A DNA stretch of 64,000 bases from NCBI GenBank assembly GCA_963924565.1, contig OZ004608.1:5828001-5892000 (forward strand), in the 5' to 3' direction. Of this stretch, positions 38,956 through 64,000 are shown piece by piece. The notes beneath the pieces are model-generated. The model saw only the letters and a program-made list of their open reading frames with translations. It made no database searches and was not told where the DNA came from. How positions within the stretch are numbered: position 1 is the first letter of the stretch; each line of letters begins with the position of its first letter. This DNA is from Ascidiella aspersa (taxonomy: Eukaryota). The position numbers and the translations under genes are program-made.

Positions 38956-39217
38956 AATAACAACGACCTTATTATTTTACAATAACACTTGCAATAAGGC
39001 ATTTTGACTAGATTTTAATATAGTGTGTTTATGGTACTTCGTGCTGAACAAGTAGAGTTTATTAACAAAACGTTTAGACATTTTTAGTAAATTCAGTGTT
39101 ACACGATTGAATTATTTCTTAAAAACTAATACAATCAGATCCAAATGCACCACAGACCGTTGCAGATAGCTTACAACTACACAAAAGGAAGGTTCTTACA
39201 TAATGGAGCATTTAGAC

Positions 39218-40726: not shown

Positions 40727-43700
40727 TCAGATATTCTTCTTTGCGACACTTTGTGGCTTGGATTTTGGACGCTTTATCACGGCTGTGTACATGTCGTTGC
40801 TGGTAGGTTGGCTGTCGGGAGTTGCAAGGTGACCAGATGCTTCGTCGGCAAAGTTATAGGTTTGTGACGACCCTGTTTCATTTTTTTGTGGTTCAACTCC
40901 TTAAAATCATATAAATGGTATACCGCTGCAATCATAACCGACTTTGCGTGTGATATCTGCACCCTGTTTGGGAATAATTTATCTGACGCCTTGGACCGTT
41001 ATTACACCGAAAGAATTGTTACTTTACACACACCTGACGCAATCTCTAAAGACTTTTTGTAAAAGTGTAAGCACAACAAATTATTCGAAGCTCGTAAATT
41101 TCCGCATTGAAACCTAAAGGGGCGTATTTCATTGCATATGTCTGATTAGGCCGGGCTGGCAACTTATAAAATTCAAACCCAAAGAAAAAGTTATTCCATT
41201 GCCAGCAAAACACAACGTTGAGGAATTACGTTTTTAGTTTACAATTTAAATCGTAAGCACAGACGGAAATTTGCAATATATTGTGTCCTAAGTTGCACAA
41301 TCAGCCTAATCGTGGTCATTTTAAAAGTTTGTGATTGAAATAAAAGGTTTTGGACACGTTAACATCCTCTTTACACTTAGTAAATTAAATATAGGGCACT
41401 TTAAAACCATGAAATCTTTGCAAGTTATTACTTTCACCGTTTTCCACTTTTCTTGGTATCCAAACAAAGACATAACGACTTCTAAAAACAACATGGCTCG
41501 ATTTTCTTACCACGTGTTGCTTCGGAGTAGACCGCTTCCTGTGTGGAAAGGGATACGTTGTCTTCCACCGTGCTGTACTCCACACTCAATCCACCACTTG
41601 TACCTTCGTTTTGCCCATAAGTAGCCGGATTAACTGCGGTGGTTGAGGTTTCCATTCCTGTTATGTTCAGGTGCGAATATTCGTTGTCGTATTGTTGCGC
41701 GCTTTCGAGTTGCAGCGTTGAGTATTCTTGCAGCGGTTCTGGCAACTCGTAATCATTTTCCGCTTCATCCTGGTCTGTACGAGTCGAAATAACTTTTAAA
41801 TGAAGAAACCTATGCAAGATATGAACTTAAAAATAAAAAAAACGAATTAAATATAGTAAAGTTACACTTTTGAATTCTACGGCAGGAGCAAAACAGATTA
41901 CAATTTTGTGAGGATTTCGGTCAACTATATGAGGTGATTGAAGCATAACAACCGGATGTTGCAGTTGGCATACAACAAATATCAAATTCGTAGCAGAAAT
42001 AGGCAGCATTTTATGGACATTCAAATACCTTTTATATTCACAAGGATACCTATGCGTGCACTTTTTGGGACCTTTATTATTCATTCTTGGTCTATATATA
42101 ATGCCTCATATTCATGTAAACACATCCAGGCCGATCGATCGTTCACAAAAGGTCGTTTAGCGGTTAAAATATCTCCCATAATCATGGACTGAAAATACAG
42201 TAAAAAAAAAAGTTAAAAAAAATATGTTTAACTTAGAATAAACCGTTATGTGGTTGTGTTGCAGCTGTTTTAGTCGCCTCCGTCCTTCTACGCTTCCTGA
42301 AATGGAAGCAAAGCACAGATAAACAAACCACGGTAAAGCATTATTAACCAATGCCTTCCACCCACCTCAGACAATGCACAGCAGCAACTACTGCGCAACA
42401 AAGAAGTACAGCTCCCGCGATTGAAGCGGCTAATGTTGTGGTTAGATTTCCTGGGCCTCCAGATGACATGGTTGTGCTGTAGACTACAAAGCAAACACGT
42501 GTAAATCTCTTTTGATAACAATTTGACCATAAACGAGAAAAAGGTATTACTCCTGTTTGGTTGTCAATTAAAAGAAAAACCCAAAAAATTTCGCAGCTAA
42601 AGCCAATTTACGATTAGGCTTACCATACTCTATTTGGTTATTAGGCAATTTTAAATGAACTTATATTTACCTTGCGATCCAGTTTCTGTTGCTATAATAA
42701 AGCTTTCTGTCACATGTGAAGTCACACTGTCGTTGTGGGCCTGGTCTGTAGACCATTTGTGTAATCCGCCTTAAATAGTTATTGGCAATAGTTAAATCAG
42801 TGTTTTTTTTTTACTTGGGGGCGCACCTAGAGGCATTTTAAAACGAGGCGGCGCACTTTTTGAGCGAAGCGGGCGCGAAATATTTGAGCTCTACCTGTTT
42901 TTTTCTTAAATAGGTTGCAATTTTTTATTATATAGGCTTTATAGTATATTTAAAGAGACTCCACCCTTGAGACCAAAATAAGAACAACATTAACTTGGCA
43001 ATAAAAGACAGTTAGGAATAGGGCGTAAATAGGACTAATACCTAATAGTCGTAACAATGACGAAATCGGAATAAGACCTAATTGGACAAAATAAGGCCAG
43101 ATACAACTTTATTTAACACCATACGTAACTATCACCAACTTCCCGAATATTTTCAACCTTATTATTATTAACCCAATTGCTAACACCACCAACTACCCGC
43201 CCATAAGCCCAAACAGAGGCAAAAAAACAGGGCCAAAACAGCGGCTCCCAAATATCGGCAGAAAACGGCCAATGCCAAACAGGTGTCACCCAATCATCCC
43301 ATACCCTAATCATCCCATACCCAGTCTTGGGCGTAATATTGTCCATTTAGTTCTTATTCCGATTAATTTTGGGCTTAGTTTGACATGTTTAGGTCTTATC
43401 TAGACTATTTTAGATCTTTTTCCGTCTGGTCATTGCTGCGAATTTGGCGTTATTATGTCGGTGGTCTTATTACTATGGTATTGTAGATTATCTGATTTAG
43501 ATATTGCTGTTTTGTAGGTCTTATTATGTTTTCACTTGAAAGTACTGTGGAATCAATAAGCTAAGCTTAATTGGAAGGTAATTTCTAATTAGTGTTAATC
43601 CACTGTAAATATTAAAATTGCAGCGACTAGTATATAGTGGTTTGGTTTCCTGAAAAGTTTCCAGATGACATGACTGCGCTAAAGTCTACAAATCAAACCC

Positions 43701-45029
43701 ATTTTTTTTAAACCATTTAGCGGTATTACTCCTGTTTGTTTGTGAAGTACAAGAAAAGCTAAAATTTTCCAGTTTCAGCAAATTTGCTATTACCTCACTC
43801 TATTTGGTTATTAGCAGTTTTAAAAGTTCTTATATTTACCTTGCGATCCAGTTTTTGTTGTTATATTAAAGCTTTCCGTCACGTATGACGTCACGTTGTC
43901 GATATGACCCTGGTCTGTAGACGAATTAGGAAATCCGCATTAAATAGTTAATGGCAATGGTTAAGTCGAAGACAATAGTGAACTTCTTGTAAGTCTTATG
44001 TGTGCTTTACCTGCCTTATTTACCCCGGGCTCCAAAAATTAGGGGTTTAGCATAACAAGTTTGCTGAGCAATAGTAGCACAATTCTTAACATCTGTGCAA
44101 CCTTGTGGGTACGTTTAGTTTTCTCATTTTAAACGTTTATAAAGAAAATGTTTATTGTACGCTTTACGATACCTGAAATGCGTGAGTATTAGCCTGTTTC
44201 GAGACGTTATAGTTAGACAAGGGCGCATTTTTTAACAATACAGATTACATGTTTGTAGCACAATTTAAGCCGCTATCAAAATGCGGAGTGTGTTCAACAC
44301 ATTTACAACAGTCTTGTAGTCCTAAACGTTCAACCTTTGAAAGACCTGTTAAAACGTTGTTGGTTGATAAAGCGTAGACTGTTGTCGCAATGTTTGTAGA
44401 AACTTCATTTTGTGACTCGAGAGTGGTGAACGGTTGTGTTGTTTGTGGTGGAGCTTGTTCTACAAATTAAAGCACGTGATTTGTATAAAGTCAATTTTAA
44501 GTGTAAATAGTCAGACTTACTGGTCGTTCTCTGGCAAATGTATTTTTCTGATCGGCTACATTGTATATCCACCCAAGGATAGTCCTGGTCAGTTTTTTCT
44601 ATCGCTGCACAGTCCTCCAGCCAAAATCCGTCGTTCGGTTCTCCAGCTTTCCAATTTCTATAATTTAACCGTAATCCGTCCAGCCATTCGAATTTGTTGC
44701 CAGTTGCTCTTTTCAATCCGATGTAATATAGTTCTGTAGCTGAAAATACATGCGCAATTACAATACGTCACAACTCACGCACTTCTATGAAACTGTTAGG
44801 AAACATCACCTGTAATAGTTCGCAGTTCTTTCGTTAAAAATGTTTGAATCTTCGACGAGTTGACTTTCGCAAGAGTTCCATTCAATTTAACACAAGCTGC
44901 TAAAGCTTGGTTGAAATCCTTTTTGTTGGTGGTTTCAATGTGGTATTCCAGGTTGTCCAATTGATGCCAAATAGCGAAAGCACTACCAAAAAATGTTAAA
45001 ACAATTGTCACACAAAGCAGCTTATTCAT
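40727..45029 (-). CDS. L1: type I membrane C-type lectin receptor (signal peptide, EPN CTLD, S/T stalk, TM, tyrosine-motif tail), about 436 aa
   Basis: Exons: 45029-44810 (signal + CTLD N-half), 44739-44521 (YIGL..WKAGEPND..C..WVD..C..YICQ), 44459-44346 (weak donor; the alternative GTAAAT downstream is in the same phase), 43914-43840 and/or 42745-42671, 42483-42366 (TM LAASIAGAVLLCCAVVAAVHCL), 42296-42244 (RKRRR), 41774-41511 (YELP, YSTL, YSHL, VEYSTV, VYSEA), 40899-40727 (DMYTAVIK..KNI*). All phases are compatible. Confidence 0.82.
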
Positions 45030-46039
45030 CCTACAGTATATAAATATTCTGTGAGCTGAAAGGCTTTGTAAACTGAATGAGCATTATAATAAAACTCGTA
45101 CGAGTGTTCCACAAAGAGCAACCTTGTGATAACCTCTATACTATAGTTGCATATAGCCTATTGATTTCAGACGAACTGCGAAACCACCTCTTCCTATAAC
45201 TGAGTGAGTGAGTGTATGTGACGCATTACACTTTGCAAGATACTCAGCAATTGTGTGGGACAGTGCCCTGGCGGAACTGTTTATAAAAGCGTGTCAGTTT
45301 CAAATAGATTTTAAAAAGTTCAACAGAGTAAAAGTGCGTTAAAAATGAATTCTTTTTAGACATGAATGAGTGCTGGCTCGCACTGCTTGCTCTTTTGCAA
45401 TGTTCTGATACTCGAAACCTCAGTAGCTGAACGGGGTCGATGATCTTGCAATATTCCACACCATAGAGTTTTTCGTCTTCCACCAGTATATCGGGGGTTA
45501 ACATTAACTCCGGGCCTTGAGCTTGAAGCAATTAAAAAAATTTAGTATTTAATTTTTCTTTGTGCTGTCATATATTTTAGCTCGGAAACATTTAAATTCG
45601 TAGTAACATTGCTATGTTTGTATAAAGCCACCAGGCACAGTTTTACGTTTTGTTAAGCTTATAAATTGATTTTAATACTTCCAATGTTTTAACGACTAAT
45701 GATCGTGGAAATATATATATGCCTTTTTTAAGGTATGTTTAATTGTAGACGTGTTTTGACATGTTTATTTTTATAATTAGAACATGTGTACGACTGCCGA
45801 CTGTCGTACGTTATAAAGCTTGTAACCAAAGTATACAACACACCTGAATTACATAAAAAAACAATATCCGGTGGTAAGATGTTGGTTGACATTTTATTGA
45901 TCTAAAATATCTACTTAAAATGAGTAAATGGTTTTGCATTGTTTACTTCACGCATTATCCTGTTATAAAGTGAATTATCTCTAATGTTTTGGCACGATTT
46001 TAGCACTATCTCATGTTCCAAAACGCAAAATAAAAGAAA

Positions 46040-46545
46040 CCTAAAATCTCGGCACTCCAATATGTTGTTCTATCCGTTTGGTTGCAACATTGTAACTTTA
46101 TAGGGCAGTGTTTCTTTATTTTTTAGTTTTGTTCACCCCTAGTTATCTTCAGACTTAATTCTCATGTTATGACAAAACTGTCTCGTCTATATAAAACAGC
46201 ACAAAATGTCTTACTGCAGAGCTATCGTCCATTTCTGACGATTCACCATTATTCACCCCTTTTGGTTTGTCCACCCTTGCAAAACTGTTATTCACCCTAG
46301 GGTGAACCATCCACCTGTTTAAGAAACATGTTTTAGGGTGTTTGACGGAACTTTCGCCTTTGGCACAAAATACTACGTTTTTTTTAAATACGCCTATCAA
46401 CGGTAAGTGTCGCTTTCTCACTACTAAGAAATCTAATATTTGCGCTGGCTAATTTGCACAGAGCCTGACTTCGGGAAAACTCAGTCAAATCGGCGGGAAC
46501 TTGAGTTTCATTTTGCCGCGACGGCAATAAACAATAATCACTAAA
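46040..46545 (+). pseudogene. Eroded plus-strand CTLD-like exon pair; related relics near 40099, 40449, 47078, 52860-53200 and 60705
   Basis: Short intron 46403-46461 (GTAAGT..CTAAT..TTTGCACAG) joins ..FAFGTKYYVFLNTPIN|EPDFGKTQSNRRELEFHFAATAI in frame, resembling CTLD beta1/alpha1 without the Cys. It is interrupted by a hAT MITE. Confidence 0.35.
46106..46330. mobile_element. hAT-type MITE with TTCACCC repeats
   Basis: CAGTGTTTCTT..AAGAAACA-TG; TSD TTATAGGG/TTTTAGGG. Confidence 0.75.
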
Positions 46546-48396
46546 TTTAAGACATATGTAGTAAGAATAGCAAAGCCAATGCTGAAGTTTAAACGTTTCG
46601 TATATCTCTTTATTTGTTTTCAATATCAGACATATGGATGCTTAATCCAAATGTTGATCATGCTGTTTTATATAGAGCTCATGCTGGTCATTTAGCGTTT
46701 CCACAATGGCTAAACCAAATAGCAAAAGTACTTTGAATCAGATCAAAAACAACAATCGTAGTAAAGACGATGCGCATCATTAACGGTGGTGAAAACAACT
46801 AAATCCCAATCTTAAAAATGTTACTCAAACAAACCTTGCCTACATCTAACCTCATGATAAGCTATTCAAACAGCGTAATGCACAGGGAATGTGTGTAGTA
46901 GAACGATAAGAAGGTTAATTAAGGTAACTTTTAAAAACTCGACGGTAACTCAAAGCGTTTAAGAATCGTTTCACACCGAAACCAAAAAATAAATGAAAAT
47001 AAATGCTAAACAGATTTAGAATTTTGTACGTTAACTTGAAACATAGTTTTTTCAGTCTTCCAATTGACTTTGCACAGAGCCTGACTTTAGGAAACGTAAT
47101 TTATTTCGGACTTACGATGTATTACATATGGCCGTGACGTTGATTAAACCTGAATTTCAACTTTTTTTTAAATTCATTTGCCAAACTTTTCAAAAACACA
47201 GCAAAAGCGAGGATATTCAGAGTTTTTTTCAAAACATGTTTAAAAAAACTTAGCATCAATGGGACATAGTGTAGTGTTGGGTGATTTGTTGACAAAGTCC
47301 TACAATAAGAACGATGGTTGCTTATAGAACACTTTTACTGTGAGTTATCTGAGGTGTGTTGTTAGGATTTTCAACATTTCAAATGTTCTTCTTACGATAA
47401 ACGAAAATCCCATTGTTTCAACTATAATATACACTGTCCTGCTTTGCATATTATTTTCTCAAATAAGAAACAACGTACGTCGATGTTTGCGAACTACTGT
47501 AGTTTATTATGTTAAGTCAGGGGTCAGCAGAGTGAGTTCGAACGGCCCGCTGCAGATTTCCTTAACGATGATAAAGTGCAGTTGAAAATTTGTCGGATTC
47601 AATTACAAATTAACTTTTACTTATTTTTTTAAACTGAATGACAATTGATTAAAACTCAATACAGTTGTATAATTGGTTATAATTTATTCGTTAAGCAAAA
47701 ATCGTGTGAATTAAGTTGGACAGAAAATTTAACTCCGGCTCGCTATCGCCCGACCTTACAGATAATTCGTCCATTTATGTCAAAAGTGGTGGCTCCTGTG
47801 TTAAGCCCTGTAGAGAAATTGGGCTCCATAAATTCTTCAAGTGTTTCTTTAAAAAGTGTAGGATTAAGTTACATCGATTAAAAAATGCAGAATGTTTTAT
47901 CATATTGAAAATTTTATGAGATATAGAAAAATTTACAGTAATTTGTGAAACGTAAGTCACATAGAAAATCGTGTGTTATTTTTTAGTGGCGGAAAATTTA
48001 TAGCAACCCTTTTAAAACTATTTATTGATACAAACTTTTTACAGTAGTTAAACAAACACTTTTTCTTGTAATTCGCGCGATACAAGAGTTGTTTTTTGTG
48101 CTATTTAACAAACATCTGTATACAGTGCGAATAACAGTATTACTCATGAAGCACATTATTTATGAATGTTGTTTTAGATGCTAAGGTCAGGTCTATATGC
48201 GATGGAAAGCGAGTCTAAAGTTTTAGGTAATTACCTTGCACAGAACACCAACTACACGTACAGAAAATATAAAAATGAATTAGTCAGGAAGAATAAAACT
48301 CTCAATTTACGTCCAATATTGTTTATACCGAGAAATTAACATTTATTTTTCTAACTGCTGTAAGGAGGCTTTCACTGGTATTGCATTTGTTTGGGC

Positions 48397-51300
48397 CTAG
48401 AGGTTAAATTGTTCTTGGGTCCTAAACTCGACGTATCCCGGGTCTTTTTTCTCATTTTCCTGGACTGGAAACACTGGGTTGGGTTTCACGTAACCGCCTT
48501 CTTCTTCTTCGTGAGTACATTCTTCTGGACCTTAAAATACTATGGATTATCATGCAATTTGTTAAAAATTGATAAAGTATTTTTTTCTTAGGTTTTCTGT
48601 ATATATTACAAACTTAATAATTTTGGTACATCACTGATTGTTGCTTAAAACGTTTTTTGAATTAAAGCATTTTCATTCTGCAGCGGTATATGAGAATTAA
48701 GGAGACAAGTCATAATTTTAGACGATTAAAATAAAAAATAATTTAGGCTTACTGTTAAATAAACTTATTAACCTGCTTAATTATCGCGTAACAATTCCTA
48801 GATTTGTCGATATACTTTCGTTACATCTTTTATTAGTTTTTTTTATTATAAGTGTTGCATTCAGCGATGAGTGAAATTTCAACAGCTATTCACTTCGAAT
48901 TATTCCCAGATTTATTGAACAGTATTTAAATAATCTAACAAGCAAAGTTTCGCATATTTTAAGGAGTTTAGTCTACTCTAGAGAATACAATAGGAGTTTG
49001 CGAATTTCCGGTGGTAGTTTAGATTGAAAATAGAAACTTTCAGTTTAGAATCGCGTAATAACTATCCATTTCACGGTGTATTTCGTGGCATAGAATTTAG
49101 TCTATTCGACTCATTTCGTATCCGTTCATTTTGGTGCCAACACTAAAAGGAGGACTAGTTATAGTGCACCTAGCATTACGTTTACCGTTGGTGTTAACGT
49201 AGATATGTGATGTGCTTGCTATGGGAACTTCGTAGGCACTTTCCATCACCACTTCAGAATTCTTTTTAGGGAATCTAGCAATTTAGGAAATTTTTAACTC
49301 TGGGTAAATGGGCAAGCTATTGATATTAATTACATTTACAATGTCACACAAATCTTTTGTTTATATTAAGGGCAAATTAGGTTAATTTATGTCTTTTTAC
49401 TTTAAAAAATAATAGTTTCATGAGCATCAGCTTATTGAATTTCTATAAATACCCAAAACACGTTAAACATAATAATCATAATACGTTTCGGTTGGCCATC
49501 CTTGCGCTTATTGGCAAAAGTGAAAATCTAAACAGTTGTTTTGTTTATATTAAAACGTTGTCACCCATCTCGAGCAACAGTTTTTATTCGGTTGTATGTC
49601 TTTACTTGCCTTATCTGGTGACGTAGCTGAAAAATATTTATGCCAACGGATGCCAACAAGAGAAGAACAAGAACGACTACCGCTATGGTGAGACCGTGGG
49701 CAGATTCCGTTTTAACAGACCTGTTTTGAGCTATGAATAGAGCAATAGTTAAGTGTAGTTTTCTAGGTAAATTTTATTTCTACAACACCCTTTGTTCTAT
49801 AAGTAAAAAACGTCTTGAGTAGGGTATGACTAAATTTACCACTTTTTATAGAATCCCGGTATACACTTATATATTCCCATTTTGCCAGCATTTTATCATT
49901 AATGCCATTTTTAAACCGCTTTTTGCGTATTGCGTCGCACTATTTTTGGTGGTGGCGCAAAAAGTGTCTTAGCGGCAACATGTTTAGGTCCGTGCTCCGC
50001 AACCTTTTTCACTTACGGTACACCAACAGAGCCTGAACAAATTCGGCGGCACACCTCCGAAATATTTGACGACCGACAATAAGCAACATAAGCAAATATA
50101 TTTCTGGTTTTACGGGTTCTTCTGAAAATATCTTAAGACGGTTGAGGTGCTCAAAGTGCACCCCGTGAAGTAGCTGATAGGAAAACATTGAAGGCTTTAA
50201 ACAGCATATTACAAAAATTGAAATCTGATAATTGGGTTTTGTACTTTTTTGCCTAATTTACTTTTTTGGAAGATGCTGTTTTTAACAATACTTTTTTAAA
50301 GATTATTTTTAACAATCACTGTAATACATTTACTTCATGGGTTTAAGCGTATGGATAACCTTACTTCAAACTTTGGTGTAAAGTAAACGATTACTGTATA
50401 TTTATACTCCTGGTAGTTGTACGAGTTAAATAAACTATTTTATAGCGTTTAAATTTGGCGATTGAACCTTACTTAGGTTTTAAACGAGGTTGAAATATAA
50501 AGGAAAGTTGTTTTTTGTCAAAAGTAGCATTTAAAAAAAAGAAAAAAATAAAGCACATTGAGAAGCATCGTGACACACCTGACGGTTTAGCGGCATAGCA
50601 GTTTGCCGCGGCACACCGGTCACGTGATGTTGTGAAGTGCTTCAAGTTAATTAGTTGGGCTTCCCCAAGGCGCAAAACAAAAGCTAATATTGCATCTAAA
50701 AATAACTCCCTAACTTAAACACGAAGTTAACTCACGTTTTAAAGTATTAACCCACTCCTATTTGGTTGCCGGTTTATGTAACAAAACCGTAGCCCGACCC
50801 AATAGTTTGTGGTAGTTTTCCGGGTTTCTGGTTTTCCAACGTTATGGATTTTGTATTTTATATTGGGATCTATGCATGTTTAAGGAAATCTTAAACAATT
50901 TTATTCTTATATAATTGGTTTAAGATATGTTTTTACTATGCTTATCTTTTTGGCTGTATTAATGACTATTTTTGACCAATGTAAAATTATGGCAAAATCA
51001 CATGAATCAGAATTGTCTTACCTGGTACGCAGCTGGAAACCAAAGTAGTTGGTGCCGTGGTATTAGCTTTGCCCATGGAGACAGAATTCCCGGTGGTCGT
51101 TTGTTTTGCGTTGGTTGTAACTGGAATGAATGGCGAGGAAGTGACAGAGCTCGTTTGCATCACGCTACTTGTCTTAACAAGATCTAGAAGTGAAATATTT
51201 ATTATGGCTTCACTTTAAGACTAAGGCAACTTAACGTGAATATTATATGGAGCTAAATTAGTAACTCGTTTTGTGGTGGTCTGTTGGCTTAAATTTGTGC

Positions 51301-52279
51301 AATGCATGATAAGGTTTAAAGTTTTTATTAAATATGGCAAAACATCGCTTGTATAACAGCCCTATTTGAAGTACAATGTTGGCCTACCTAAACTAGATAA
51401 ACTATAAGTTCGACGCGTTTTTTGAAAGTAGTTTTGTATAGGTATAGCGTCTCTTTTAACGCCTATAGTGAACTTTTACTAAATTGCAATTTTTTCTTGG
51501 TTAATCTAGTTATTTTAATTTTTGCACGGGATATATGGTTATAGTGTTTTAAGTAAAACTTGTTCAATTCAAAATTAGCTGGACGCAATTTGGTGACTTT
51601 TCTCCGAAAATTTTATGGGCACCCTTAAACAGAAATCTCTGATCCTTGCCACATTTTTTCAGCTATTTTGATCTATTTAAATTCTTATAAAGAACTTGTA
51701 GCATTTTCAATTGAGCTGTCTGGTTTCTGTTTGTCTGTTTTATTTAAAAACCAATAAAATGTATTCACTCACCAATAGTTCTTTGACAAATGCAACAAAA
51801 TTGGGTGGTACAAGGAATATCATACCTCAACATACTGTCACTCCAGCTCCTGGCATTTCCCATGGTGACGCAATTCTCACCCTCTCCATGGTTGTCAGGT
51901 TGATTAACTCCCCATGACTTATACACCAAAGCTGTCCCATCCAACCATCGAATCTCACCACCACTTATTCGCTTCAAACCGATGTAAAACCCTTTATTTG
52001 GAACTGGAAATAATATTAAAATGAAATACATAAACCTCAAATGTATCGAAACAGTTTAGAATAAGACATACCTGTTAAGTTTGTTAGAAACGTCTGGATC
52101 TTTGACGAGTAGACTTTGGCAAGTGTCGCATTCATTCCAGCACAAGCAGAACTTGCTCCATCGAAGTCGGTCGAACCATTAACAACAGCGTATTGTAAGT
52201 TGTCCAACTTGTTCCAATCCACAGCAGAGGAATTCGTCGCCAGAAAGAAGCACAGAAATACAATTTCAGTAAAACCCAT
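48397..52279 (-). CDS. L2: type I membrane C-type lectin receptor (QPD CTLD, S/T stalk, TM, YEVP/YVN/GYVKP/GYVEF tail), about 314 aa
   Basis: Exons: 52279-52072, 52003-51773 (FYIGL..WGVNQPDN..C..C..CICQ), 51183-51022, 49730-49610 (TM GLTIAVVVLVLLLLASVGINIF; GC donor AG|GCAAGT), 49274-49186, 48530-48397 (ends QFNL*). Total 945 nt, in frame. Confidence 0.82.
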
Positions 52280-54546
52280 TGATTAGTAAAGCGACTATTA
52301 AACTGTACAAAAAAGTGATTTCAATTTCGGAATTCGTTTAATTCTAACCAGTTTACGTTGTATTTAAAATCAAATGATATTTTAAATCGTGCAATATTGT
52401 AAGTTGAACGTATATATATATATCTAACTGTTAAAAGACAGCTGCAGTTTAGCCGAACTTTAAATACATACCACCAGCAATAAGCCCGATGTATTGTGAA
52501 TACTTATAGAGTTTTTGCGTAGTTATACACAATGAAACAAATCATTATACCGTGGGCTCTTCGTGACTATAGCATGCTACGTCATTGTCTGGTAGGTTGT
52601 TAAAGAGGCGGTATGGCAAACGGCATCAAGCCTACATCGCGCCTAACGTTGCATTATATACGCGTTCATAGCAGAGTAAGTTTTCTAAGTCGCGTATTGT
52701 AAGTCAATACACAGAATGTATTCATGACGAAAACAAATAATAGTTCATGATAAACCGGGACGCCGTTCCGCCTTACTTCGACAACTGCCATATAGTTATA
52801 GTAAAGCAAAAAAAGCGCGACATTTTATTGATTTTGATACATATATGTTATGCTCTATATATGCCCTTATCGGTGGCTTTTCCAGGCAAGCCACCCAAAT
52901 CTCTATATTGCGTTGCGCCTTTGTGCAACCTTGTTGGAAAATATGTGTCATCATACAACAATACAGGAAGGTTAATTTAAGACACTGCAACACAACAAGG
53001 TAATTTAAATTTGAAAGTGTTGAATGTTTTTATCCCGAAAAGTAAACCTTAAGCATTTCATGCCTATAAAGCCAACCTTTGGCGAATATGTACTGGATTA
53101 TAGCTAAAGGATTTTCGTTTAAAAACAAATATATGACTAACTTCGAGGAATTTTATTCGTTTCGGCGGGAAAACGTATCTCATTTTGCCGCGACGATCTT
53201 AAATGTGAATATATAAAAACAATGAGTGTTTATTTATTCTTGATTATTTTGAACTATTCCCTTATGCACACCTTAAACGTGGTTGTTTTGTATTTCCGTA
53301 AAGATCTTAAACGTTAAAAATGTTTTTACATCAACACCGCGTGATAAATAGCTTCCTGTAGTTCACAGTCCTGTTTACGACTTTGATCGTTGCTGACTTT
53401 TATAAATCGCATGTTAAGTCTTAGATTAGTTGTCAAGTCTTAGATTATAAAACAACCGCTTCTCAAACATAAGATTTTCGTAAAGAGTTGTATAAATTTA
53501 CAATGTATGGAAAATTTCCACCTAAGTATACCAATTTGATTTGTAATCGACAGTAACAATTCAATATTGCAAACATAATACATTTTGAGTTTATTTCAAA
53601 ATACACAAAGTGCTTTAATGTTTCGAGATATTTTTGGTATGTTTAGTAAACGTGACGTAAACAAATTCACTATAGGCTATGTCAGGAATGGCCAAGCTTT
53701 TAGCATAATGGGCCGCATTGCCACTTTCAATATTTCGATGGGCCGCAAAACATTTTAAATAAAAGTTGTGACGTCATAAGTTACATCATAAAACAACTCA
53801 ACTTACAAACACCCGCTCTTCGATACTGAACTCATGCGCCAATATGCAAGGGCGAAAAATTGAGTTTACATGCCGTACCATGCCATGGTAAAACACCCTT
53901 GGGCTGATATTAATTCTTAAAACGGCCCGCAAAAACACACATTTAGAAAAGTACACACTTACTTAACAATGACGGAGGCACAAGTTTTCAATGGTTGTTA
54001 AAATGCCACATTAGACGCGAATGTAGTCTCAAAAAATATAAGATTAAGCCTACATCAAATACTGTGCCCTCTACACGTTTTGATGATAGTCGAAACAATT
54101 GTTTTGATTAAAGGCTTCTGAAAACTTTTTAGTAGCGTTTAGCGAAATGCTAATATAAATCAAAATAAACCGACTTCTAAGTAAAACCAAAAACAATTTG
54201 TGTTGGCTAACATTGTGTGGAACTTTAAATTGTTTTTATTTGTAACAAATCACAAAAACAACACTAAACATCAAATTAAAACAAGACCTGAAATTTGAAC
54301 AAAGATTAATAATAACCGAACATAATGATAATGATGTACAAATAATGATGAGTAACAATTAGGACGCGTGATTCACTAGCAATAAGAAAACAAAACAGTT
54401 CAGAATGCTGCGATCATAGCAGTTATCTAAATATATATAAAAATGTTTCAGTAGGGAACGTTGAATGTCTCATTTCACGTAAAATATCTCCCGAGAATTA
54501 ATTTAACCCAACCGTGTTTTATTGGTAATTAATTTGCTTTAGCTGA

Positions 54547-57500
54547 TTAGCATGATTGACCTGGCGACTTGAACTCGACGTATCCCAGGTCTGTTTCATC
54601 ATTTCCCTGGACCGGAAACACGGGGTTGGGATTCACGTAACCGTTTTCTTCGTCTTCGTCAAAACATTTTTTTAGGTCTTAAAATATTATAAATTAAATA
54701 TGCAATTTGTTTAATAAATATAATTTTATGTTGCGTGTTTTACTTTTGTTGGTAACGTAAACATGTCACTATGCCTGGTAGCAACAGCATATTTATGTAA
54801 ACATGTCACGTTCTGCACTACGTGTTTACCGTTGGTGTTAACGTAGACGTGTTTTGGACGAGATGTGCTTGTTATGGGAACTTCGTAGGCACTTTCCATC
54901 ACCACTTCAGAATCTTTTTTGGTAATAATCTAAAAATTAGGGGCTTAGTTATATGTAGCTAAATGGGCAAGCTATATTTATTTTCCTGTTACAGGATAAA
55001 CTACGGTATATAAGTACGTAATATTTGCAAAGCAAAATGAACTTTGGTTTATTTTAAATTGATTTACGTGCTAAGAATGTTATTTAATTTACTAATAATG
55101 TCCAGTTAGTACAGTGCAGTTTAAGATACAAGATTTAAAAAAGGAACTAATTTAATTCTATTAGCACCAGTGTTTTATATTACTAAAGATACTGAAATAT
55201 CAAAAAATGTTTAAAAGTTTCAGTTTTGTAGGCAGTCATTAATATCGTATAGTTGTATGTTTTTTTTGAGTTGTCACACATTAAATAATCTTAGCAACTC
55301 TTGTATTATTCAAGGCTAATTTCTCGTGGGCGTTGAAATTATGCTGTACCAAGAAATAAAAAACACGCAGTATGCAATCACAATTCCAATGTAAACCAAT
55401 GATGGCTACTTGTTTGGGGACGCTAGCAAAATGCCAACGCAATAAAGCAACGCGTGCATAATGCGTGCGCCGTGCATGCTCTAGAGCAGTGCAGTGTCTT
55501 AAAGTGCCACAACTTAACTCAGTGTACGAAATTAGAAATATGGGCAAATCCATGACAGTTTTAATATGGTTGAATGTTTACTTGCCCTTTCTGGCGACAA
55601 AGCTGAACAACATTGACGCAAACTGATGCCAATAAGAGAATTGCAAGCACGATTATCACTATGTTGAGGAGTTGACCAGAATCCTTTTTAACAGGCCTGT
55701 TTTGAGCTGTGAACAAGGGAATAGTTATTTTAATCTGAACAACACTTTATTCTAAACATTCTTCTGCCAATGTTAAACTCTGATGTGTAGTCAATTACCT
55801 ACAGGTCTGGATTAGATTATAATACCGTCCGTGTAATTGTTAGATATTTGATCGCCTGTTAAAATATAATTCTTTATAATAAGCTTTTGTTTGATATAAG
55901 TAGATAAGTATCATAAGTTCAGTTAAACAGAGCAGCTTACCCTGGAGCACGTTAATCTTTATAAATCTTTATAAAGCTAAAATTAATAAAAACGTTATAA
56001 TGCCTGAACATATATTGTTTCGCGAAAATTACGTATAGTTGGGTCTTTGTATTCAAAATTTGTGTTTCTGTTTTAATAGACATAAATTACTCAATAATTA
56101 TATTTTAAACTGTATTTAGATGCCTTGTTTTCGGAATACGCGTAAAATATTGCGTTAACCGTTTCAGTTGCTTGGTTTGGCACTGCGATCGTGTTTAACC
56201 TTTCTACCCACGAAGGTGATGCATCGGACATCGTGGATCTCGATTTATTTTGACTTAAGTGTCGCTTATTTTGTCAACCAACCTTTGCAATTTGCCTGAA
56301 ACCTTAACTTAGAGTTTCACCACAGACTGTATATGCTTTTGTAGCTTTGCCGCGTGGCCAATTATACAGAGTCGTGGCGCATTTAAGTTTTCTTAGCGGC
56401 ATGTTTCGAATGCGCGGAAGTAATTTAATTTTAATAGATTGACTTTGCCCTGGCGTCCTCAGTGCGCAAAAACTAAAGCTCTAAACCGCGTCGCGAAATG
56501 TATATAGTCAATAGTTTAAATGCGAATAGGTTGTCTATTTAATTTGCAATGTTCACTTCTTATTCCTTGTCACAGTCGTTCAATATTGCAAGACCTTGGT
56601 AATTCTACTTCTAATTTTTTCTTTTAAGTTTTCTAGTGCTAGGATATTAACGCGCGTTGCATAAAAGTGAAACATATTATCTTTATTATTACTTGTATAA
56701 GAATCTATTTTGGCACCGGATTTTTGGCCCTGATTGGGTTTTTTGGTGGTAATGGATCGGGTTAAAAAATGGGTTAGACTATTTTACAGGTATATCACTT
56801 CTATTGTAGTCTTATTCGGAACTGTGTTTTATCCCGATTGTGATGTTCTTCTTATCACGGAGTTATAAATGGAATCCAAATTTTCACACATTCCTTCTTT
56901 TTAAATCTATTCAACAAAATGAGAAGAAGCAGATTTGTCTTACCTGATATAGTGGTGGATTCCAAAGCAGTTGGTGCAGTCGTGTGAGCTTTGAAAACCG
57001 TCGTCGTTTGTTTTGCGTTGGTTGTAACTGAAGTAAATGGTGATGAAGTGACCAAGCTCGTTTGCATCACGCTACTTGTCGTTATAAGTTTATCTAAACA
57101 CAAAATGTTGATTGGATTTACGTCAACGCGAACAACTAATGTACATGCTAATTTTATACAAAGAACGTTTAGCTTAAAGTATAGGGTAGTTGTTTCTTAA
57201 AACTGATTTTTGAACATTGTCATTGTTTTAATTTGTTTTGGGGTTTTATTTTTAATGGAATTAAAATTACCGGAGCAGCTGTTTTTTGATTTATATTACT
57301 ATGCCTGGTAGCAACAGTTTATATATTGTCAGTGTTTATTAAATACATGCACCACCTATAGAGAATATAACATTCCTATGAGACTTAATTTTTGCAAAAA
57401 TAAACTCGATAAAAATTCTATACGGCCCAATTTTTATGTAAGTTTTTCAACCTAGAACGTCTTAAACATGCAATTGATGATGGTTCATCTAGTAAGTTTA

Positions 57501-57990
57501 TTTTTTGCGCTTGGTGTGAACGTATAACTTCTTTGCAATATGGCAGCTGTATTTTACGTGGTACTTGTATTACACGATATAACCTATTAGCTTCGAGCGG
57601 GTCTGACATGTTTTATGTACAACTATGGAAGCAATTACCCTCACAAATTATTTTGACCATCATTCAATTTTGATTTCGTTCAGGAAAACAAAAAACAAAT
57701 TTAGCTTCATGTAGGAAAGTAACGCTGGAAATGAAATATTCTCACCACTTGGTCTCTGACAAATGTAGGTTTTCTTGTTGTCGCATCGTATGTTATTCCA
57801 AGGATACTCCTGGCCACTTTTTTCTATTTCTGCACAATCCTCATCCGGCCAAAAGTCGTTTAGAGCACTATAATGCGACTCGTACGACTATAAGGTTTAT
57901 AGCAACCTTATGATAACCTCTTATACTGTAGTTACATTTATCTTATTGCTTTAGAGTCATAGCTTTCCTTAAAGAAACCGCCTCTTCAAA
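54547..57990 (-). pseudogene. L3: C-type lectin receptor with deleted signal/CTLD N-half; stalk, TM and tail exons still open (pseudogene or headless adaptor)
   Basis: The CTLD remnant 57861-57746 (NDFWPDEDCAEIEKSGQEYPWNNIRC..YICQ) is fused directly to sequence homologous to the L1 upstream region (57862-57990 vs about 45079-45195). Intact exons 57093-56944, 55706-55582, 54929-54830 and 54677-54547 are paralogous to L2. Confidence 0.75.
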
Positions 57991-58550
57991 CTTCTTAACG
58001 TTTGTGAAGAAACGCGCTATACAAAACATCAGCATGACCTAACTGAATTGTTTGTCACAATTATAATATTTTTTGACAATTTTGTTAATGGTAACCAAAC
58101 AGATACGATGGAGATTTACTTTTTTCATGTTGCTCCTGTGTTTATATGTCTATGTTTTGCCCTAGGTCACCTGCTCCTATGTTTATCTTTGAACGTGTTT
58201 ACTTGATCTACACAGAAAATCTATTTGGCATCAAATAACGCGAGAAATTCCAACGCGGAACAAAGTCGAACAGAGCATATGATTTTAGAAAAGTTCAGGC
58301 CTGAACATCTAACATTTTTATTTAAGAAAGCAAAATAAAAAGTAACGTCGGCTAAATCTACGCTTCATATTCAGTGGACCACGTTGTTTGCTTAGGTGTT
58401 CCGTGTAGTTGTAATGTCGTTTTAGTTTTGGCTTTGCCAAGTTGTGATTATCTGTTCCAGCATACACTTTTATTTATATATTTATTGGTACAAATCAAGT
58501 TTCTGTTCCGTATACCACAACTATGGGGATGTACGATACTACTCGATCTA

Positions 58551-58716
58551 TGATGCAAGCTGGCCTGCAGTGAGGTTCGAACTTGGTAGAGCGACGGTCC
58601 CGGCTTGACCGAAGGTCGTGGGTTCGAACCTCACTGCAGGCCAGTTGTTTTTCTGGCTTGCACTGCTTGCATCAGAGATGGGCAGATTCGGCGAGTCTGC
58701 GATGGCTTTTCGGTGA
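58551..58716 (+). mobile_element. tRNA-derived SINE preceded by an inverted copy of its own B-box region
   Basis: 58560-58582 is the exact reverse complement of 58622-58644. Confidence 0.8.
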
Positions 58717-59940
58717 ACTATTATTGCGGAAGCCGTAATCGTTGGTCATAAAGCAGCTTCCGAGGAGCTAGATCACAGATGTTATTAAACACATGTATGT
58801 GTGTGTCTTTCATTAGACGCCACTTATATGCTTAAGAATAATAATAGGAAACACTAAAATGTTCACCTACTGATGTACCTGAATAGTCTTTTACAAGTGT
58901 CTCCTTACAGTTTACGTGTTGTTATAATTAAATAAAGTGGCGCTCCAGCAGCAAATTTTAGGATTTTCCCATATATTTGCATTTGTCAGCATTACCATCT
59001 GTCATTTGACTGGAATTATAAGTATAACTTTGACAACTTGAAAACAATTAAAATATTTAGTTTTATAATACACGATACAAGATGGAATCAAAGAGTATTA
59101 GAAAGTTGTCAATATACTAATCGGTTTCTCGGATTGTTGTTTGGTAATACTTAATAAAAAACAAACGTAAAACAGTGATAACTTATCAAACTTAAAAGAG
59201 GACTTTTTACAGTTTAAACATTAAATTATCAAAATTTTATTTGTAGCGTTTTGTATTTCTTTCTCACATTAAATGTTTCGTGTTATTCTTCTATTTCTTC
59301 GCTGATTTCTATTATCCTCACGCTTTGCCTAAAGGCGCCGTGCTTTTTTCTTCGATGATTGTATACAAGTCTTGCAGTCTTGTGTTAACTTGTCATTTCA
59401 TCAGCATTTTAAAGTAAGCTGCAGCTTTAAGGTTTAACAGTAACTGTTTGTTTAGCAAAGATTATTATTCGTTTTGGTAAGAAGCTTTCATGAACTTCTA
59501 CTCAAGGTCATAAACGTATATCATCAGATCCTAAGGTAAGTGTTTTTAAGTTTATAGTTGGTTTGTAAACAATATATTTTCCACCATAGATCTTGTTTTG
59601 ATTTAAACCTTTTGTTTTCTACTAACCTGAAGTTACAACTAATATTCTTTGTGATATGAGCTTTTATATTGTTTCACATTGTAAAATCAAAGCAAGACAC
59701 ATACATGTTACGAAAAATGTAGAGTTGTTGTATAATAATACTGTGTTGTATAGGATTGTTGAGTGCGACCTTTATGACGTATTGCTGTGCCTGTATATAA
59801 CCGCCACTCTTGCAGTACTTGGGCCTGCATTACTTGTGTTCTAATACGTCGCTGTGTGTCACGTACCCTGCCAGTAAATACTACAAAAAAGATAATTCAA
59901 AGGGATTTAAAGAAAACACAATTATCTAACAGAATGTTTA

Positions 59941-60095
59941 TCGACTCGCTCCCCTTAAGCCTGTGTAGCCCAGTTGGCAGAGCGACAGTAGGCCGTGAGT
60001 TTGAACCCCACTGCAGGCTATAGTTGGTTTTCTAGCCTGTCTTGCTTGCGTCATTGATCATCAGATTCGGTTACTGTGCGATGGCTTCCGTTGTA
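59941..60095 (+). mobile_element. tRNA-derived SINE (paralog of the 38801 copy)
   Basis: Near-identical to 38801-38955. Confidence 0.75.
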
Positions 60096-61185
60096 ATAAC
60101 AACGACCTTATTAATTTACAATAACACTTGCAATAAGGCATTTTGACTAGATTTTAGTAGTGTGAGTTATGGTACTTTGTGCTGAACAAGTAGATTTATT
60201 AACAAAACTTTTAGACATACTTAGTAAATTCAGTGTTACACGATTAAATTATTTCTTAAATATAATACAATTAGATTCAAAGGCACAGCAGACCGTTGCA
60301 GATAGCTTACAACTCCACAAACGCGAGGTTCTTTACACAATGGAGCATTTATCAAACTTTAAATAACACCCTATTTACAACAACGTTAAATGTTAATGAT
60401 AAAACTTGCCCCAAATTAAAGGTTATGCATTTCGATCGATGATTATATGTCACAAGCATCGGTAGTCTAAAACCCGAACGTGGTTACTTTTTAAAAGCCG
60501 CTTAATGTATATATTTGAAGATCAAAAAATCGCTAAACTAAATATTGCATGCTTATACAGCTTGGGGTTGCATGAATAGAATTCAAATATTCAAGCAATA
60601 CGAGTAATATAGGCATGTTTTTACTTACAATTGATCAATTTGTTAGGTAAGGGAATTTTACGTTTCTTTGAATCACTTCGTGTGCTTGGTTTTTTAATTG
60701 CGCAGAGACCGATTTCGGGAAAAAAGCTCATAATTTTGCCGCGACGCTTAAATCAAGACATACATAGTTTGTATGCGTGGACTTCAAGGCAGCATAAACT
60801 TGCGGTAAGCTTATAATTTTTTTAAAAAGTGAAAGAAGCTATTAAAAAAAAATAATGCGGAATTAAACACTAAGTTCATTAAATAAATAAATGAATAACT
60901 AGCATTAAAAGAACAAAAAAAATACGGGTAATATTTGCATGTTTTTACATGTTTGGGACAATTGGTCAAACCGTTTGGTTGACAATTTTACTTTAAAATA
61001 CGGGTTCATGTCTTTACCATTTCTTGTGCTTGTTTTTCTAATTGTACTGAGGCTGATTTCCGAAATCATAAAACGATTATCAAGACATATTGAAAAAGGT
61101 ACGACCATAAACAGCTTCTACAGTTTTACTGCGTGGGCACTTCAATACAGCGTGACGTTGCGATCAGCTTATGTCGTACGGGACA

Positions 61186-61249
61186 CCATATAATTCCTGC
61201 ATTAATACGGGGCGCCATATAATTCCTGCATTAATACGGGGCGCCATAT
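61186..61249. repeat. 29-bp tandem duplication
   Basis: CCATATAATTCCTGCATTAATACGGGGCG x2. Confidence 0.9.
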
Positions 61250-61566
61250 TTCCTCCAATGTGAAACAATGGGTAGAAGGTATATTAAGAGCATAATTAAT
61301 TCCACGACGTCCTTCAAGTGCAAGGGTGAGACATAGTCAAGTTAATGCGTAAACGAAAATTGTGCGTCAAAAAAATAAATCACGCTAATTTTCTTACACT
61401 ATTTTTGGTGCGTTAAGGTGGTTGACCAACTGATCAGTATTATGACGTAGATTTTCAGTCAACAGAAAAACTGATATATCGTATATGTGCTTTGGATTAC
61501 GGTATAGTGAATTTCAGATACTCCTCTGTGCGATATTTTGTGGCGTGAGTTCAACGATTCAACGCT

Positions 61567-63948
61567 TTATAACGGCCGTGTATACATGTCGTTGTTGGTA
61601 GGTTGGGTGTTGGAATCTGCAAGGTGACTAGATGCTTCGTCAGCGAAGTTGTAGGTTTGTGACGACTCTGTTTCATTTCCTTGTGGTTCAGCTCCTTGAA
61701 AATCATACATAGGTTATACCGTTGCACTATAAATATGGAAATTTGCGTGCTATCTGCACCCTGCTTGCTCGGAAATTTCCGTATTGCAACGTAAAGGGGC
61801 GTATTTCATTGCAAATGTCTGATTAGGCCGGGTCTGCGGACTAATTGCCAGAAAAACAAGTAAACAGTGTAAAAAGTTTTGGTCAGTTTGATTTTATTTT
61901 TTGGAAAAACTACATATTTAGAGTTCGCGTGTTTTGAGTCAGATGCAAAAAAACAGGCGGGTTATACCATTTTTGTTCGTAAATTGAATTTGGGATCATT
62001 AAAACCACGGAATCTTTGCAAGTTTGTTACTGTTTTCCATTCTACTTGGTATCGCTCCGAAACACATAACTACCTGTAATCATGCTTTCTCTTTAGAATA
62101 TAATCATTTCCATAATTTATTTAATGTCTTACCACGTGTTGCTTCGGAGTAGACCGCTTCCTGTATGGAAATGGATACATTGTCTTCCACCGTGCTGTAC
62201 TCCACACTCAATATACCACTTGAACATTGGTTTTGCCCATTAGTAGCCGGATTAACGGCGGTGGTTGAGGTTGCCATTCCTGTCATGTTCAGGTGCGAAT
62301 ATTCGTTGTCGTTTTGTTGTTTGCTTTCGAGTTGCAGCGTTGAGTATTCTTGACGCGTTTCTGGCAACTCGTACTCGTTTTCCGCTTCATCCTGGTCTGT
62401 ACGAGTCAAAATAATTTCAAATGAAGAACCGACCGGCCTATGCAAGACATAAACTTAAAAATAAAAAAACGAATTAACAATAGTAAAGGTACACTTTTTA
62501 ATTCTACGGCAGGAGCAAAATAGATTACAATTTTGTGAGGATTTGGGTAAACTATATTAGGTGATTGAAGCATAACAACCGGATGTTGTAGTTGGCGTAC
62601 AACAAATATCACATTCCAAACAGAAATAGGCAGCATTTTATATACATTGAAATACCTTTTTATTCACAAGGATACCTATACTTGCACTTTTGGGGGGCTT
62701 CATTATTCATTCTTGGTCTATATATAATGCCTCATATTCATGCAAACTTATCCAGGCTGATCGATCTTTCGCAAAAGGTCGTTTAGCAGTTAAAATGTCC
62801 CACATAATCATGGACTTAAAATACAGCAAAAAAAAAAGTTAAAAAAAATACGTTTAACTTAGAATAAACCGTTATTCGGTTGTGTTGCTGCTGTTTTAGT
62901 CGCCTCCGTCCTTCTACGCTTCCTGAAATGGAAACAGAGCATCGGTAAACAAACCACGGTACACTTTTGCATCAACCGAACCTTCCACCCACCTTAGGCA
63001 ATACACAGCAGCAACTACTGCGCAGCAAAGAAGCACAGCTCCCGCGATTGCAGTGGGTAATGTTGTGGTTAGGTTTCCTGAAAATCTTCCAGATGACATG
63101 GTTGTGTCGTAGACTACAAATCAAAAACGATTTAATCTGTTTTTTGAAACCATTTGGCGAATGGTATTACTCCTGTTTAGTTGTAAATCAAAAAAAAAAT
63201 AAAAAAAATTCGCAGGTTAATCCAATTTCCTATTACAACACTCTATTTAATTAGTAAGCGGTTTTAAATGCACTTATATTTACCTTGCGATTCAGTTTCT
63301 GTTGTTATATTAAAGCTTCCCGTCACATCTAAAGTCACGTTTTCGATAAGAGCCAGGTCAATAGACAATTTATGTAATCCGCATTAAATGGTTGATGGCA
63401 ATGGTTAAATCGTAGACTATAGTGAATATTTCGGAAATCGTAAGTGTGTTTAACTTGCCTTTTTACCTCGGGCTCAAAAAACGAGGGTTTTGGCACTCTG
63501 AGTTTGCAGTTATATTGGGACAAATCCTAATATCTGTACAACATTGTGGGTAGGTTTAGTTTTCAGATCACTCTTCGATTAAATCACGGGGATATCTTAC
63601 ATTTTAAGGTTCATATAAAATGGTTAGTGTAGGCCTAACGATAATTAAAATGCGTAAATATTAGCCTGTTTTGAGATTTTAACCTAGAAAACAAGGTGGC
63701 ACTGTTATATAATATTGATTGTATGTTTGTAGCACAACTTAAGCCGCATATTCAGACATAATCACCTTCAAAATGCGAAATTTGTTCAACACATTTACAA
63801 TAGTCTCGTAGTCCTAAACTTTTAACCTTTGAAAGACCTGTTAAAATGTTGTTGGTTGAAAAAGCGTAGACTGTTGTCGCAAAGTTTGTAGAAACTTCAA
63901 CTTGTGACTGGAGAGTGGTGATAGTTTGCATTGTTTGTGGAGATCGTT
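61567..63948 (-). CDS. L4: L1 paralog, 3' part (stalk, TM, tyrosine-motif tail); CTLD exons expected beyond 64000
   Basis: Exons: 63948-63838, 63328-63284 (shifted acceptor), 63113-62993 (TM), 62922-62870, 62396-62133 (YELP, YSTL, YSHL, VEYSTV, VYSEA), 61694-61567 (ends DMYTRPL*). Colinear with L1. Confidence 0.75.
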
Positions 63949-64000
63949 CTGCGAATAAAATTACGTGATTTTCAGAAAGCTAATTTCAAGTGGAAATAGT

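Follow-up and report, generated by a model that had tools for sequence, protein, structure and literature searches.

Membrane receptors with a single CTLD (C-type lectin-like domain) are encoded in tandem in the mammalian natural killer (NK) complex and the Dectin-1/Dectin-2 clusters (Ly49, NKG2/CD94, CLEC4, CLEC7A), where similar heads are combined with unlike signalling capacity, motifs of the immunoreceptor tyrosine-based inhibitory motif (ITIM) type are present, and birth and death of genes leaves pseudogenes. These receptors are type II proteins with an N-terminal tail, and their activating members are short-tailed, with a charged transmembrane (TM) segment pairing with adaptors that carry an ITAM (immunoreceptor tyrosine-based activation motif). 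In the tunicate Botryllus schlosseri, the Fester/FcoR clusters encode type I receptors of the immunoglobulin superfamily (IgSF) with ITIM/hemITAM tails and motif swapping among members, and proteins of the ITAM/ITIM pathway are expressed in this animal (PMC12582321). The window analyzed here, a stretch of 64,000 nt from Ascidiella aspersa (C2:5828001-5892000, GC content of about 35%), contains four genes, designated L1, L2, L3 and L4, of candidate type I CTLD receptors with tyrosine-rich tails. Tandem arrangement, similar heads with unlike signalling capacity, ITIM-type motifs and birth and death with pseudogenes recur at this locus; however, compared with the NK/Dectin receptors, the proteins of the array are of type I, have no charge in the TM segment, carry a long tail of their own in each class and retain EPN/QPD. 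With Fester/FcoR the locus shares the organization of a tunicate multigene cluster of type I receptors with ITIM-type tails, but the swapping in Fester/FcoR proceeds via alleles and alternative splicing, whereas here, as read from the genes alone, different genes carry different tail exons.

Vertebrate type I proteins with a single CTLD are represented by layilin and chondrolectin (group VIII) and by CD302/Bimlec (group XV) (PMC514892). Their domain order and topology are equal to those of the array proteins, but they are encoded by single-copy conserved genes with tails of their own, whereas the family described here is lineage-specific, comprises about 50 genes and has tails unrelated to anything found. 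Among tunicates, BsCD94-1 and CiCD94-1 are CTLD receptors of blood cells proposed to be relatives of NK receptors; BsCD94-1 was described as a type II protein, and the CTLD of CiCD94-1 as having no carbohydrate-binding capability (PMC5465252). In contrast to them, the array proteins are of type I, have EPN or QPD motifs and belong to a large array. The locus is similar to large invertebrate CTLD expansions such as that of the oyster (PMC4346834) in that CTLD genes of a marine filter feeder have been massively amplified in tandem. Modular tyrosine tails and a regular three-gene unit were not found in a non-exhaustive survey of the literature on invertebrate CTLD expansions; the locus represents a CTLD multigene cluster of a familiar kind, set apart by its type I topology, its modular and lineage-specific tails and the regular unit of three genes.

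The preliminary description of the window treated the four genes as a self-contained cluster, but they are the left edge of a tandem array located at 5.868-6.356 Mb of C2 and containing about 50 genes of membrane CTLD receptors, all on the minus strand. L1-L4 are real genes, occupying the first 24 kb of this array of about 0.5 Mb, and the region from 40.7 to 64 kb of the window (feature positions below are those of the window unless C2 or Mb is indicated) spans 1.3 units at the start of a tandem array of higher order. All searches were performed exon by exon, with single exons and not spliced proteins as queries; the array sequence was read in 20 alternate 10-kb stretches (200 kb, checked by tblastn), and the other half is known from match coordinates. 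At least 150 matches to CTLD exon 2 were found in the assembly, nearly all of them on C2 and 49 at 5.87-6.36 Mb, and exon 2 of L2 as a query gave 39 genome matches at E<=1e-12. The assembly also contains 12 exons t7 of the class A tail, with an open frame in 12/12, and 10 matches to the class A terminal exon t8, as well as 24 and 38 class B tail exons t5 and t6, respectively, and 16 A-type and 27 B-type TM exons. Within the array, about 35 distinct tail-B ends were counted. The exon order of L1 and L2 recurs in dozens of paralogs, as seen in exon-by-exon searches of the assembly, and frames are open in nearly all of the approximately 100 tail and head exons scored. A probability of about 0.7, for anatomy and evolution taken jointly, is assigned to the reading of the locus as an array of type I CTLD receptors with exchangeable tyrosine-motif tails, whose growth and decay involve duplication of segments, deletion, and either unequal crossing-over or gene conversion.

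The repeating unit of the array is an A-B-B' triplet, and L1, L2, L3 and L4 belong to classes A, B, B' and A, respectively. Class A combines a head with EPN/WVD, an A-type TM segment and an ITIM tail, in which the ITIM is invariant and YELP, a YxxL pair and YTAV are also present. In class B, a head with QPD is followed by a B-type TM segment and a tail with YEVP, YVNT, NPVF and YVEF, while class B' has an A-like head with EPN/WND on a B-like stalk, TM segment and tail. The tail order A-B-B-A proposed earlier is correct in that there are two tail classes, but the two B genes differ, L2 being a class B gene with a QPD head and L3 a class B' gene with the remnant of an A-like EPN head. Since class B' recurs across the array, the A-like head on a B-like tail in L3 represents a third class and not a one-off swap. 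Two further types were found outside the window. In class A* (C2:6110456, 6183287 and 6260133, minus strand), exon t7 is followed about 170 bp downstream by a B-type, t6-like last exon, and this tail, judged by its exons, is a case of exon shuffling between tail classes. Class A2, represented by four copies, has an A-type TM segment and a short tail, which keeps YELP and has no ITIM. An A-like gene is also located on the plus strand at 6.98 Mb of C2, so the tails reach into neighbouring CTLD clusters. More large blocks of CTLD exon 2, on both strands, were observed at C2 2.38-2.79 Mb and 6.36-7.54 Mb.

The earlier suggestion of four co-oriented minus-strand genes with the plan signal peptide, CTLD, Ser/Thr stalk, TM segment and tyrosine tail is confirmed by Pfam matches, splice phases and hydrophobicity. 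Each of the two head exons is matched by the profile Lectin_C (PF00059, cut-off 22.6 bits), with 21.1 and 30.0 bits in L1 and 19.5 and 40.9 bits in L2; taken as a pair, they span profile positions 2-35 and 49-107. Direct reading of the heads showed one core cysteine in exon 1, three in exon 2, and the motifs YIGL and (E/R)WLDG. The CTLD is split over two phase-1 exons, and the tail exons are phase-1 modular. Stalk exons contain 31-42% Ser+Thr and are probably of the O-glycosylation type; TM segments reach 2.6-3.2 (19-residue Kyte-Doolittle maximum) and are followed by basic residues. The N-terminal signal, together with the TM segment C-terminal of the CTLD and the basic residues after it, indicates type I topology, and the statement of the preliminary description that the proteins are built unlike those of the type II NK/Dectin clusters holds.

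In the putative sugar-binding site, EPN (classes A and B') or QPD (class B) and the glutamate of E(D/N)C are present. The canonical WND was found only in class B' and in a divergent A copy; class A has WVD, and class B has WSD, WYD or WHD. The heads may bind glycans, and they vary mainly in the loop that follows EPN. Inside the window, the A and B heads, compared between L1 and L2, are about 35% identical. The nearest solved CTLDs are those of MRC2, the mannose receptor (MMR), MBP, CD23 and mincle, with E values of 1e-10 to 1e-7, and also of PLA2R and DEC-205; by sequence similarity, the best matches of the heads are generic carbohydrate-recognition domains.

A profile of the class A tail, constructed from 11 t7 exons, gave no matches among 1.84e9 representative proteins, which indicates that the tail is lineage-specific and agrees with the lineage-specific family postulated earlier. 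This result also bears on a possible orthology with a conserved type I CTLD protein of non-immune function, for example layilin, chondrolectin or CD302; the overall layout (signal peptide, one CTLD, TM segment and tail) is common to these proteins and to those of the array (PMC514892). Orthology of this kind is made highly improbable by the approximately 50 tandem paralogs, which fall into several tail classes, by the absence of the class A tail from a protein set that should include vertebrates, and by best CTLD matches to generic carbohydrate-recognition domains. One-to-one orthology with layilin or chondrolectin, named in the preliminary description as a finding that would overturn its reading, was not seen, given the tandem paralogs and the result of the tail search.

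Gene L1 (class A; all exons of L1-L4 are on the minus strand) is intact, and every splice phase fits. Exon 1 (44810..45029), covering Lectin_C positions 2-35 and conserved in paralogs, contains the start codon, the signal peptide and the N-terminal half of the CTLD; its N-terminus is hydrophobic (Kyte-Doolittle maximum 1.93), and it ends with a GT donor in phase 1. Exon 2 (44521..44739, phase 1-1; Lectin_C positions 49-107, 30 bits) encodes the C-terminal half, in which three of four core cysteines and the motifs YIGL, WLDG, EPN and WVD are located. The stalk is encoded by the Ser/Thr-rich exon 3 (44346..44459, phase 1-1; 32% Ser+Thr), also kept in L4 and further genes of class A, and by exon 4b (42671..42769, phase 1-1), identified by splice sites and kept in paralogs. 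The TM exon (42366..42483, phase 1-2), with 16 paralogous copies, has a Kyte-Doolittle maximum of 2.58 over 19 residues, and the juxtamembrane exon (42244..42296, phase 2-1), conserved in L4 and in array stretch L002, encodes a basic stop-transfer stretch (RKRRR...). The tail comprises exon t7 (41511..41792, phase 1-1; 12 open copies with invariant tyrosines), containing YELP, YSTL-x11-YSHL, VEYSTV as the ITIM and VYSEA, with an alternative in-frame acceptor at 41774, and the terminal exon t8 (40727..40899, starting in phase 1), read from its acceptor and phase and containing TYNF, MYTAV and the stop codon at 40727-40729. Exon t8 is a conserved island between L1 and L4, while the adjoining intron is unalignable.

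Upstream of exon 4b lies candidate exon 4a (43838..43936, limits by protein match), a copy of the same stalk exon with 67% tblastn identity to it. This copy is part of a 350-bp internal duplication (42420-42798 versus 43617-43967, 73% by self-blastn), which also holds a partial copy of the TM exon; the two-copy stalk layout was also found in class A genes at 6.098 and 6.113 Mb. Between both copies of the duplication, in an intron and outside the gene product, there is a high-copy interspersed repeat (42805..43552), the word depth of which in two DNA runs was 4,000-40,000 versus about 100-700 in the flanks, or 20-50 times that of its surroundings. The open reading frame (ORF) at 43113-43346 was rejected as a stalk exon of L1 because it lies inside this repeat. 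The ORF at 42084-42212 was rejected as a tail exon because its conserved frame needs phase 0, and reading in phase 1 from the juxtamembrane exon stops after ten codons. Within it, the segment 42160-42212 (minus strand), located between the juxtamembrane exon and t7, has a good acceptor and is conserved in L4, as is the surrounding intron; spliced in phase 1, it could possibly give rise to an isoform with a truncated tail. The decoy isoforms suggested earlier are purely hypothetical.

Gene L2 (class B) is also intact, and its splice phases fit, the junction between TM segment and tail requiring a GC-AG intron. Exon 1 (52072..52279), supported by Pfam Lectin_C, contains the start codon, the signal peptide and the N-terminal half of the CTLD and has a GTATGT donor in phase 1; exon 2 (51773..52003, phase 1-1; Lectin_C 40.9 bits) encodes the C-terminal half with QPD and WSD; exon 3 (51022..51183, phase 1-1), a conserved island versus L3, encodes the stalk with 42% Ser+Thr. 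The TM exon (49610..49730; Kyte-Doolittle maximum 2.91) ends in phase 2 with the GC donor AG/GCAAGT. Use of the adjoining GT donor, with the exon end at 49606, would lead to a stop codon two codons into t5 and a tail-less protein. The region of the AG/GCAAGT donor (49606-49611) is kept in most of the eight paralogs read, phase 2 is required by 8/9 t5 acceptors, and the GC donor is presumably used throughout class B. Tail exon t5 (49186..49274, phase 2-1; 24 genome copies with a median dN/dS of 0.35) contains SAYEVP and IYVNT (YxN), and the terminal exon t6 (48397..48530; 38 copies with conserved motifs) contains an acidic run, GYVKPNPVF (NPxF), GYVEF and the stop codon. From their structure, both L1 and L2 look functional.

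Genes L3 and L4 are defective. In L3 (class B'), a 437-bp deletion, identified by blastn against intact class B' relatives from array stretches L020 (96% identical), L015 and L018, removed exon 1 together with intron 1 and also took away exon 2 in its 5' part, and the gene is thereby left without a start codon, a signal peptide and half of the CTLD. The remnant of CTLD exon 2 (57747..57860), defined by blastn and by a tblastn match to residues 39-73 of the L1 exon, is A-like with WNN, and the deletion junction lies at about 57860-57862. It is followed by a B-type stalk exon (56936..57082), which is an island versus L2, a B'-type TM exon (55591..55707; Kyte-Doolittle maximum 3.17), tail exon t5 (54822..54920) and terminal exon t6 (54553..54672), the last two recognized by matches to their families. 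The 5' end of t5 is 1 nt short compared with the nearest class B' relative, which places it out of frame under the GC-donor model.

The window ends within L4 (class A), and its exons 2 and 1 were found in array stretch L013 at C2:5892014-5892517, that is, 14-517 bp past the window end. Exon 2 contains, versus a nearly identical paralog, a 1-bp deletion within the WLDG motif, causing a frameshift, which could be an assembly error. Inside the window, L4 is represented by stalk exons 3 (63842..63952, approximate limits) and 4 (63282..63380, single copy), both found by homology to class A, a TM exon (62992..63114) supported by an A-type match and hydrophobicity, a juxtamembrane exon (62865..62918) with 94% identity to that of L1, and exon t7 (62131..62412), identified by family match and motif scan, with the same motifs as in L1. 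The terminal exon t8 (61567..61695), found by its match to t8, stops earlier than that of L1 (...DMYTRPL and then a stop codon). The partial deletion of the L3 head and the location of the L4 head beyond the window, both noted in the preliminary description, were thus sized and located.

The TM, juxtamembrane, t7 and t8 exons are common to L1 and L4, whose t7 open frames are 76% identical over 111 aa; in L2 and L3, the exons in common are those for the stalk and the TM segment, t5 and t6. The ITIM pattern [S/I/V/L]xYxx[I/V/L] is present as VEYSTV or LEYSTV in 12/12 exons of tail A and is absent from the B and B' tails; the tyrosine of YSHL is lost in 3/12 copies of tail A. No Lys, Arg, Asp or Glu was found in any TM segment read, and the combination of a short tail with a charged TM segment, characteristic of activating receptors, was not observed. 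The idea of paired receptors stands only in part: near-identical heads on different tails do occur, but 150 kb away and not in the window, the TM segments are uncharged, and tail A mixes an ITIM with ITAM-like motifs. Activating and inhibitory polarity may be supposed for the tail classes.

Comparison of the window genes points to constraint on exons. Alignment of L2 with L3 is limited to four islands of exon size (75-82% DNA identity), their introns being unalignable, and this speaks directly for constraint on the stalk, TM, t5 and t6 exons. In 11 aligned t7 exons, including a copy with 48% identity, residues Y14, Y23, Y72 and Y88 are invariant, and dN/dS of t7 versus this copy is about 0.36-0.42 at dS of about 1. 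The motifs of tail B, including both tyrosines of t5, are kept in copies of classes B and B' with identities of 51-93%. Median pairwise dN/dS values are 0.29-0.82 by exon and 0.29-0.57 without the B TM exon. It may also be supposed that the array is a largely inert recent segmental duplication, in which most copies are decaying or unexpressed and conservation reflects youth and gene conversion. This would fit the defects of L3 and L4, the lack of RNA reads on L1, the similarity of L1 and L4 (a segmental duplicate about 86% identical, including introns and 3 kb of 3' flank), the low dS of the tails and the equal-score copies about 77 kb apart. Such an explanation is very unlikely, since the exon islands of L2 and L3 persist despite introns diverged past alignment, the 48%-identical copy of tail A keeps every key tyrosine at dN/dS of about 0.4 and dS of about 1, and nearly all of the approximately 100 exons scored are open.

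Evidence for growth, exchange and decay within the array of type I receptors was found at several levels. The 3' flank of L1 (37229..40470) has a copy downstream of L4 at 58583-61073, with 81-91% identity by self-blastn, so the amplified unit includes the flank. In the same pairs of class A genes, dS is 0.3-1.1 for CTLD exon 2 versus 0.03-0.18 for the TM and t7 exons, which shows that heads and tails differ in their histories, by gene conversion or exon-level recombination. In a pair of B' and A2 genes located 8 kb apart, a tract of 1,659 bp with 96.6% identity comprises the upstream region with the promoter and the head from exon 1 through intron 1 to exon 2, and it ends in intron 2; beyond it the stalk, TM and tail exons are unrelated. 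This pair and the three genes joining an A t7 exon to a B-type terminal exon bear out the combinatorial heads and tails proposed earlier, and the birth-and-death turnover proposed with them is borne out by two defective copies among the four window genes and by scattered stop codons elsewhere in the array. Two runs of equal-score matches, C2:6168840-6186720 and 6246014-6263567, were also observed about 76.85 kb apart; they stem either from a segmental duplication, very recent and covering several receptor genes, or from a haplotype that is present twice in the assembly.

A possible mechanism, for which splicing, ligand, phosphorylation, cell type and immune role are all deduced from the genes, is as follows. 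Outside the cell, the heads would bind surface ligands, glycans or others, and the clustering brought about by the ligand would lead to tyrosine phosphorylation of the tails. The A tails would recruit SH2 phosphatases or kinases via the ITIM and YxxL, and the B and B' tails would recruit adaptors of the Grb2/Crk type as well as endocytic or PTB machinery. It is thereby proposed that similar heads give different cellular outputs when placed on different tails. The chances of phosphotyrosine signalling by the tails appear about even, and an immune role of the receptors is somewhat less probable than that.

The main rival explanation concerns the same motifs. The proteins may be endocytic or phagocytic scavenger lectins, comparable to the mannose receptor, DEC-205, CD302 and LDLR-type receptors, with tyrosine motifs acting mainly as sorting signals (Yxx-hydrophobic for AP-2 and NPxF for endocytic adaptors of the PTB type) and not as activating or inhibitory SH2 docking sites. 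YSTL, YSHL, YSTV, YTAV and YVEF fit Yxx-hydrophobic, NPVF fits NPxF, and the nearest solved CTLDs belong to the mannose-receptor family (MRC2, MMR, PLA2R, DEC-205). However, the ITIM context [VIL]-E-Y-S-T-V and YVNT (YxN) are kept beyond the needs of a bare sorting signal, the tails are long, acidic and tyrosine-rich, and the shuffling of heads and tails resembles that of immunoreceptor clusters. A predominantly scavenger function is considered unlikely, and it is compatible with signalling by the same tails.

Several observations weigh against the interpretation of the locus as an array of signalling lectin receptors. Two of the four window genes are defective, and the tail of class B is in frame only with the non-canonical GC donor. 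The tail-A profile search gave no cross-species tail homologue and consequently no independent gene model. Lectin activity is uncertain, as the WND position of Ca2+/sugar binding is replaced in classes A and B. The ITIM pattern is expected by chance in about 4/10 tails with nine tyrosines, by our own estimate, and the ITAM-like spacing of the A tail is 11 residues (YSTL-x11-YSHL), which agrees only with the relaxed range of 6-12 and not with the canonical 6-8. The pairs used for dN/dS are non-independent, and many copies are very young. Finally, no reads were found on the exons of L1 in RNA run X3 (tissue unspecified), about 6% of which was read; this result neither supports nor refutes expression of L1. 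The only RNA reads in L1 were on the intronic repeat 42805-43552, running on into unlike sequence.

If expressed, the genes would encode a CTLD multigene receptor complex with intrinsic tyrosine tails in the closest invertebrate relatives of vertebrates and a CTLD counterpart beside the IgSF-based Fester/FcoR of Botryllus. They would then represent another convergence of unrelated receptor families on tandem arrays, shared heads with different tails and ITIM-type signalling; if unexpressed, the array is simply one more invertebrate CTLD expansion. Phase-1 modular exons, the regular A-B-B' unit and copies in the course of swapping or decay make the locus a clean system for studying head/tail exon recombination. 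A more far-reaching, rather doubtful scenario is that ascidians independently built a functional analogue of the NK complex from type I C-type lectins. Receptors with an ITIM (class A) and with adaptor motifs (classes B' and A2) would share near-identical, rapidly diversifying heads as well as promoters; by integrating these receptors, blood cells would tell self from non-self glycans or microbes, and shuffling of tail modules would switch polarity.

Scans of the window for tRNA genes and tandem repeats gave nothing relevant to the receptors. In the genome, no match to the Pfam cellulose-synthase family was detected, and Pfam GH6 gave one exon match with 28.1 bits, just over the cut-off. The gene-poor stretch upstream of the array contains a degenerate repeat block with 62-70% identity at 23197-24740 and a 178-bp tandem repeat (2.1 copies, 93% matches) at 28001-28380. 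The segments 32773-33282 and 39213-39733 form an inverted repeat pair with 75-82% identity, and they are probably copies of a transposable element. By eye, the ORF at 18539-18778 (minus strand) ends in a sequence similar to the TM region at the C-terminus of a phospholipid phosphatase (PAP2/PLPP-type), and this ORF is probably an exon of an unrelated gene located just outside the lectin array.

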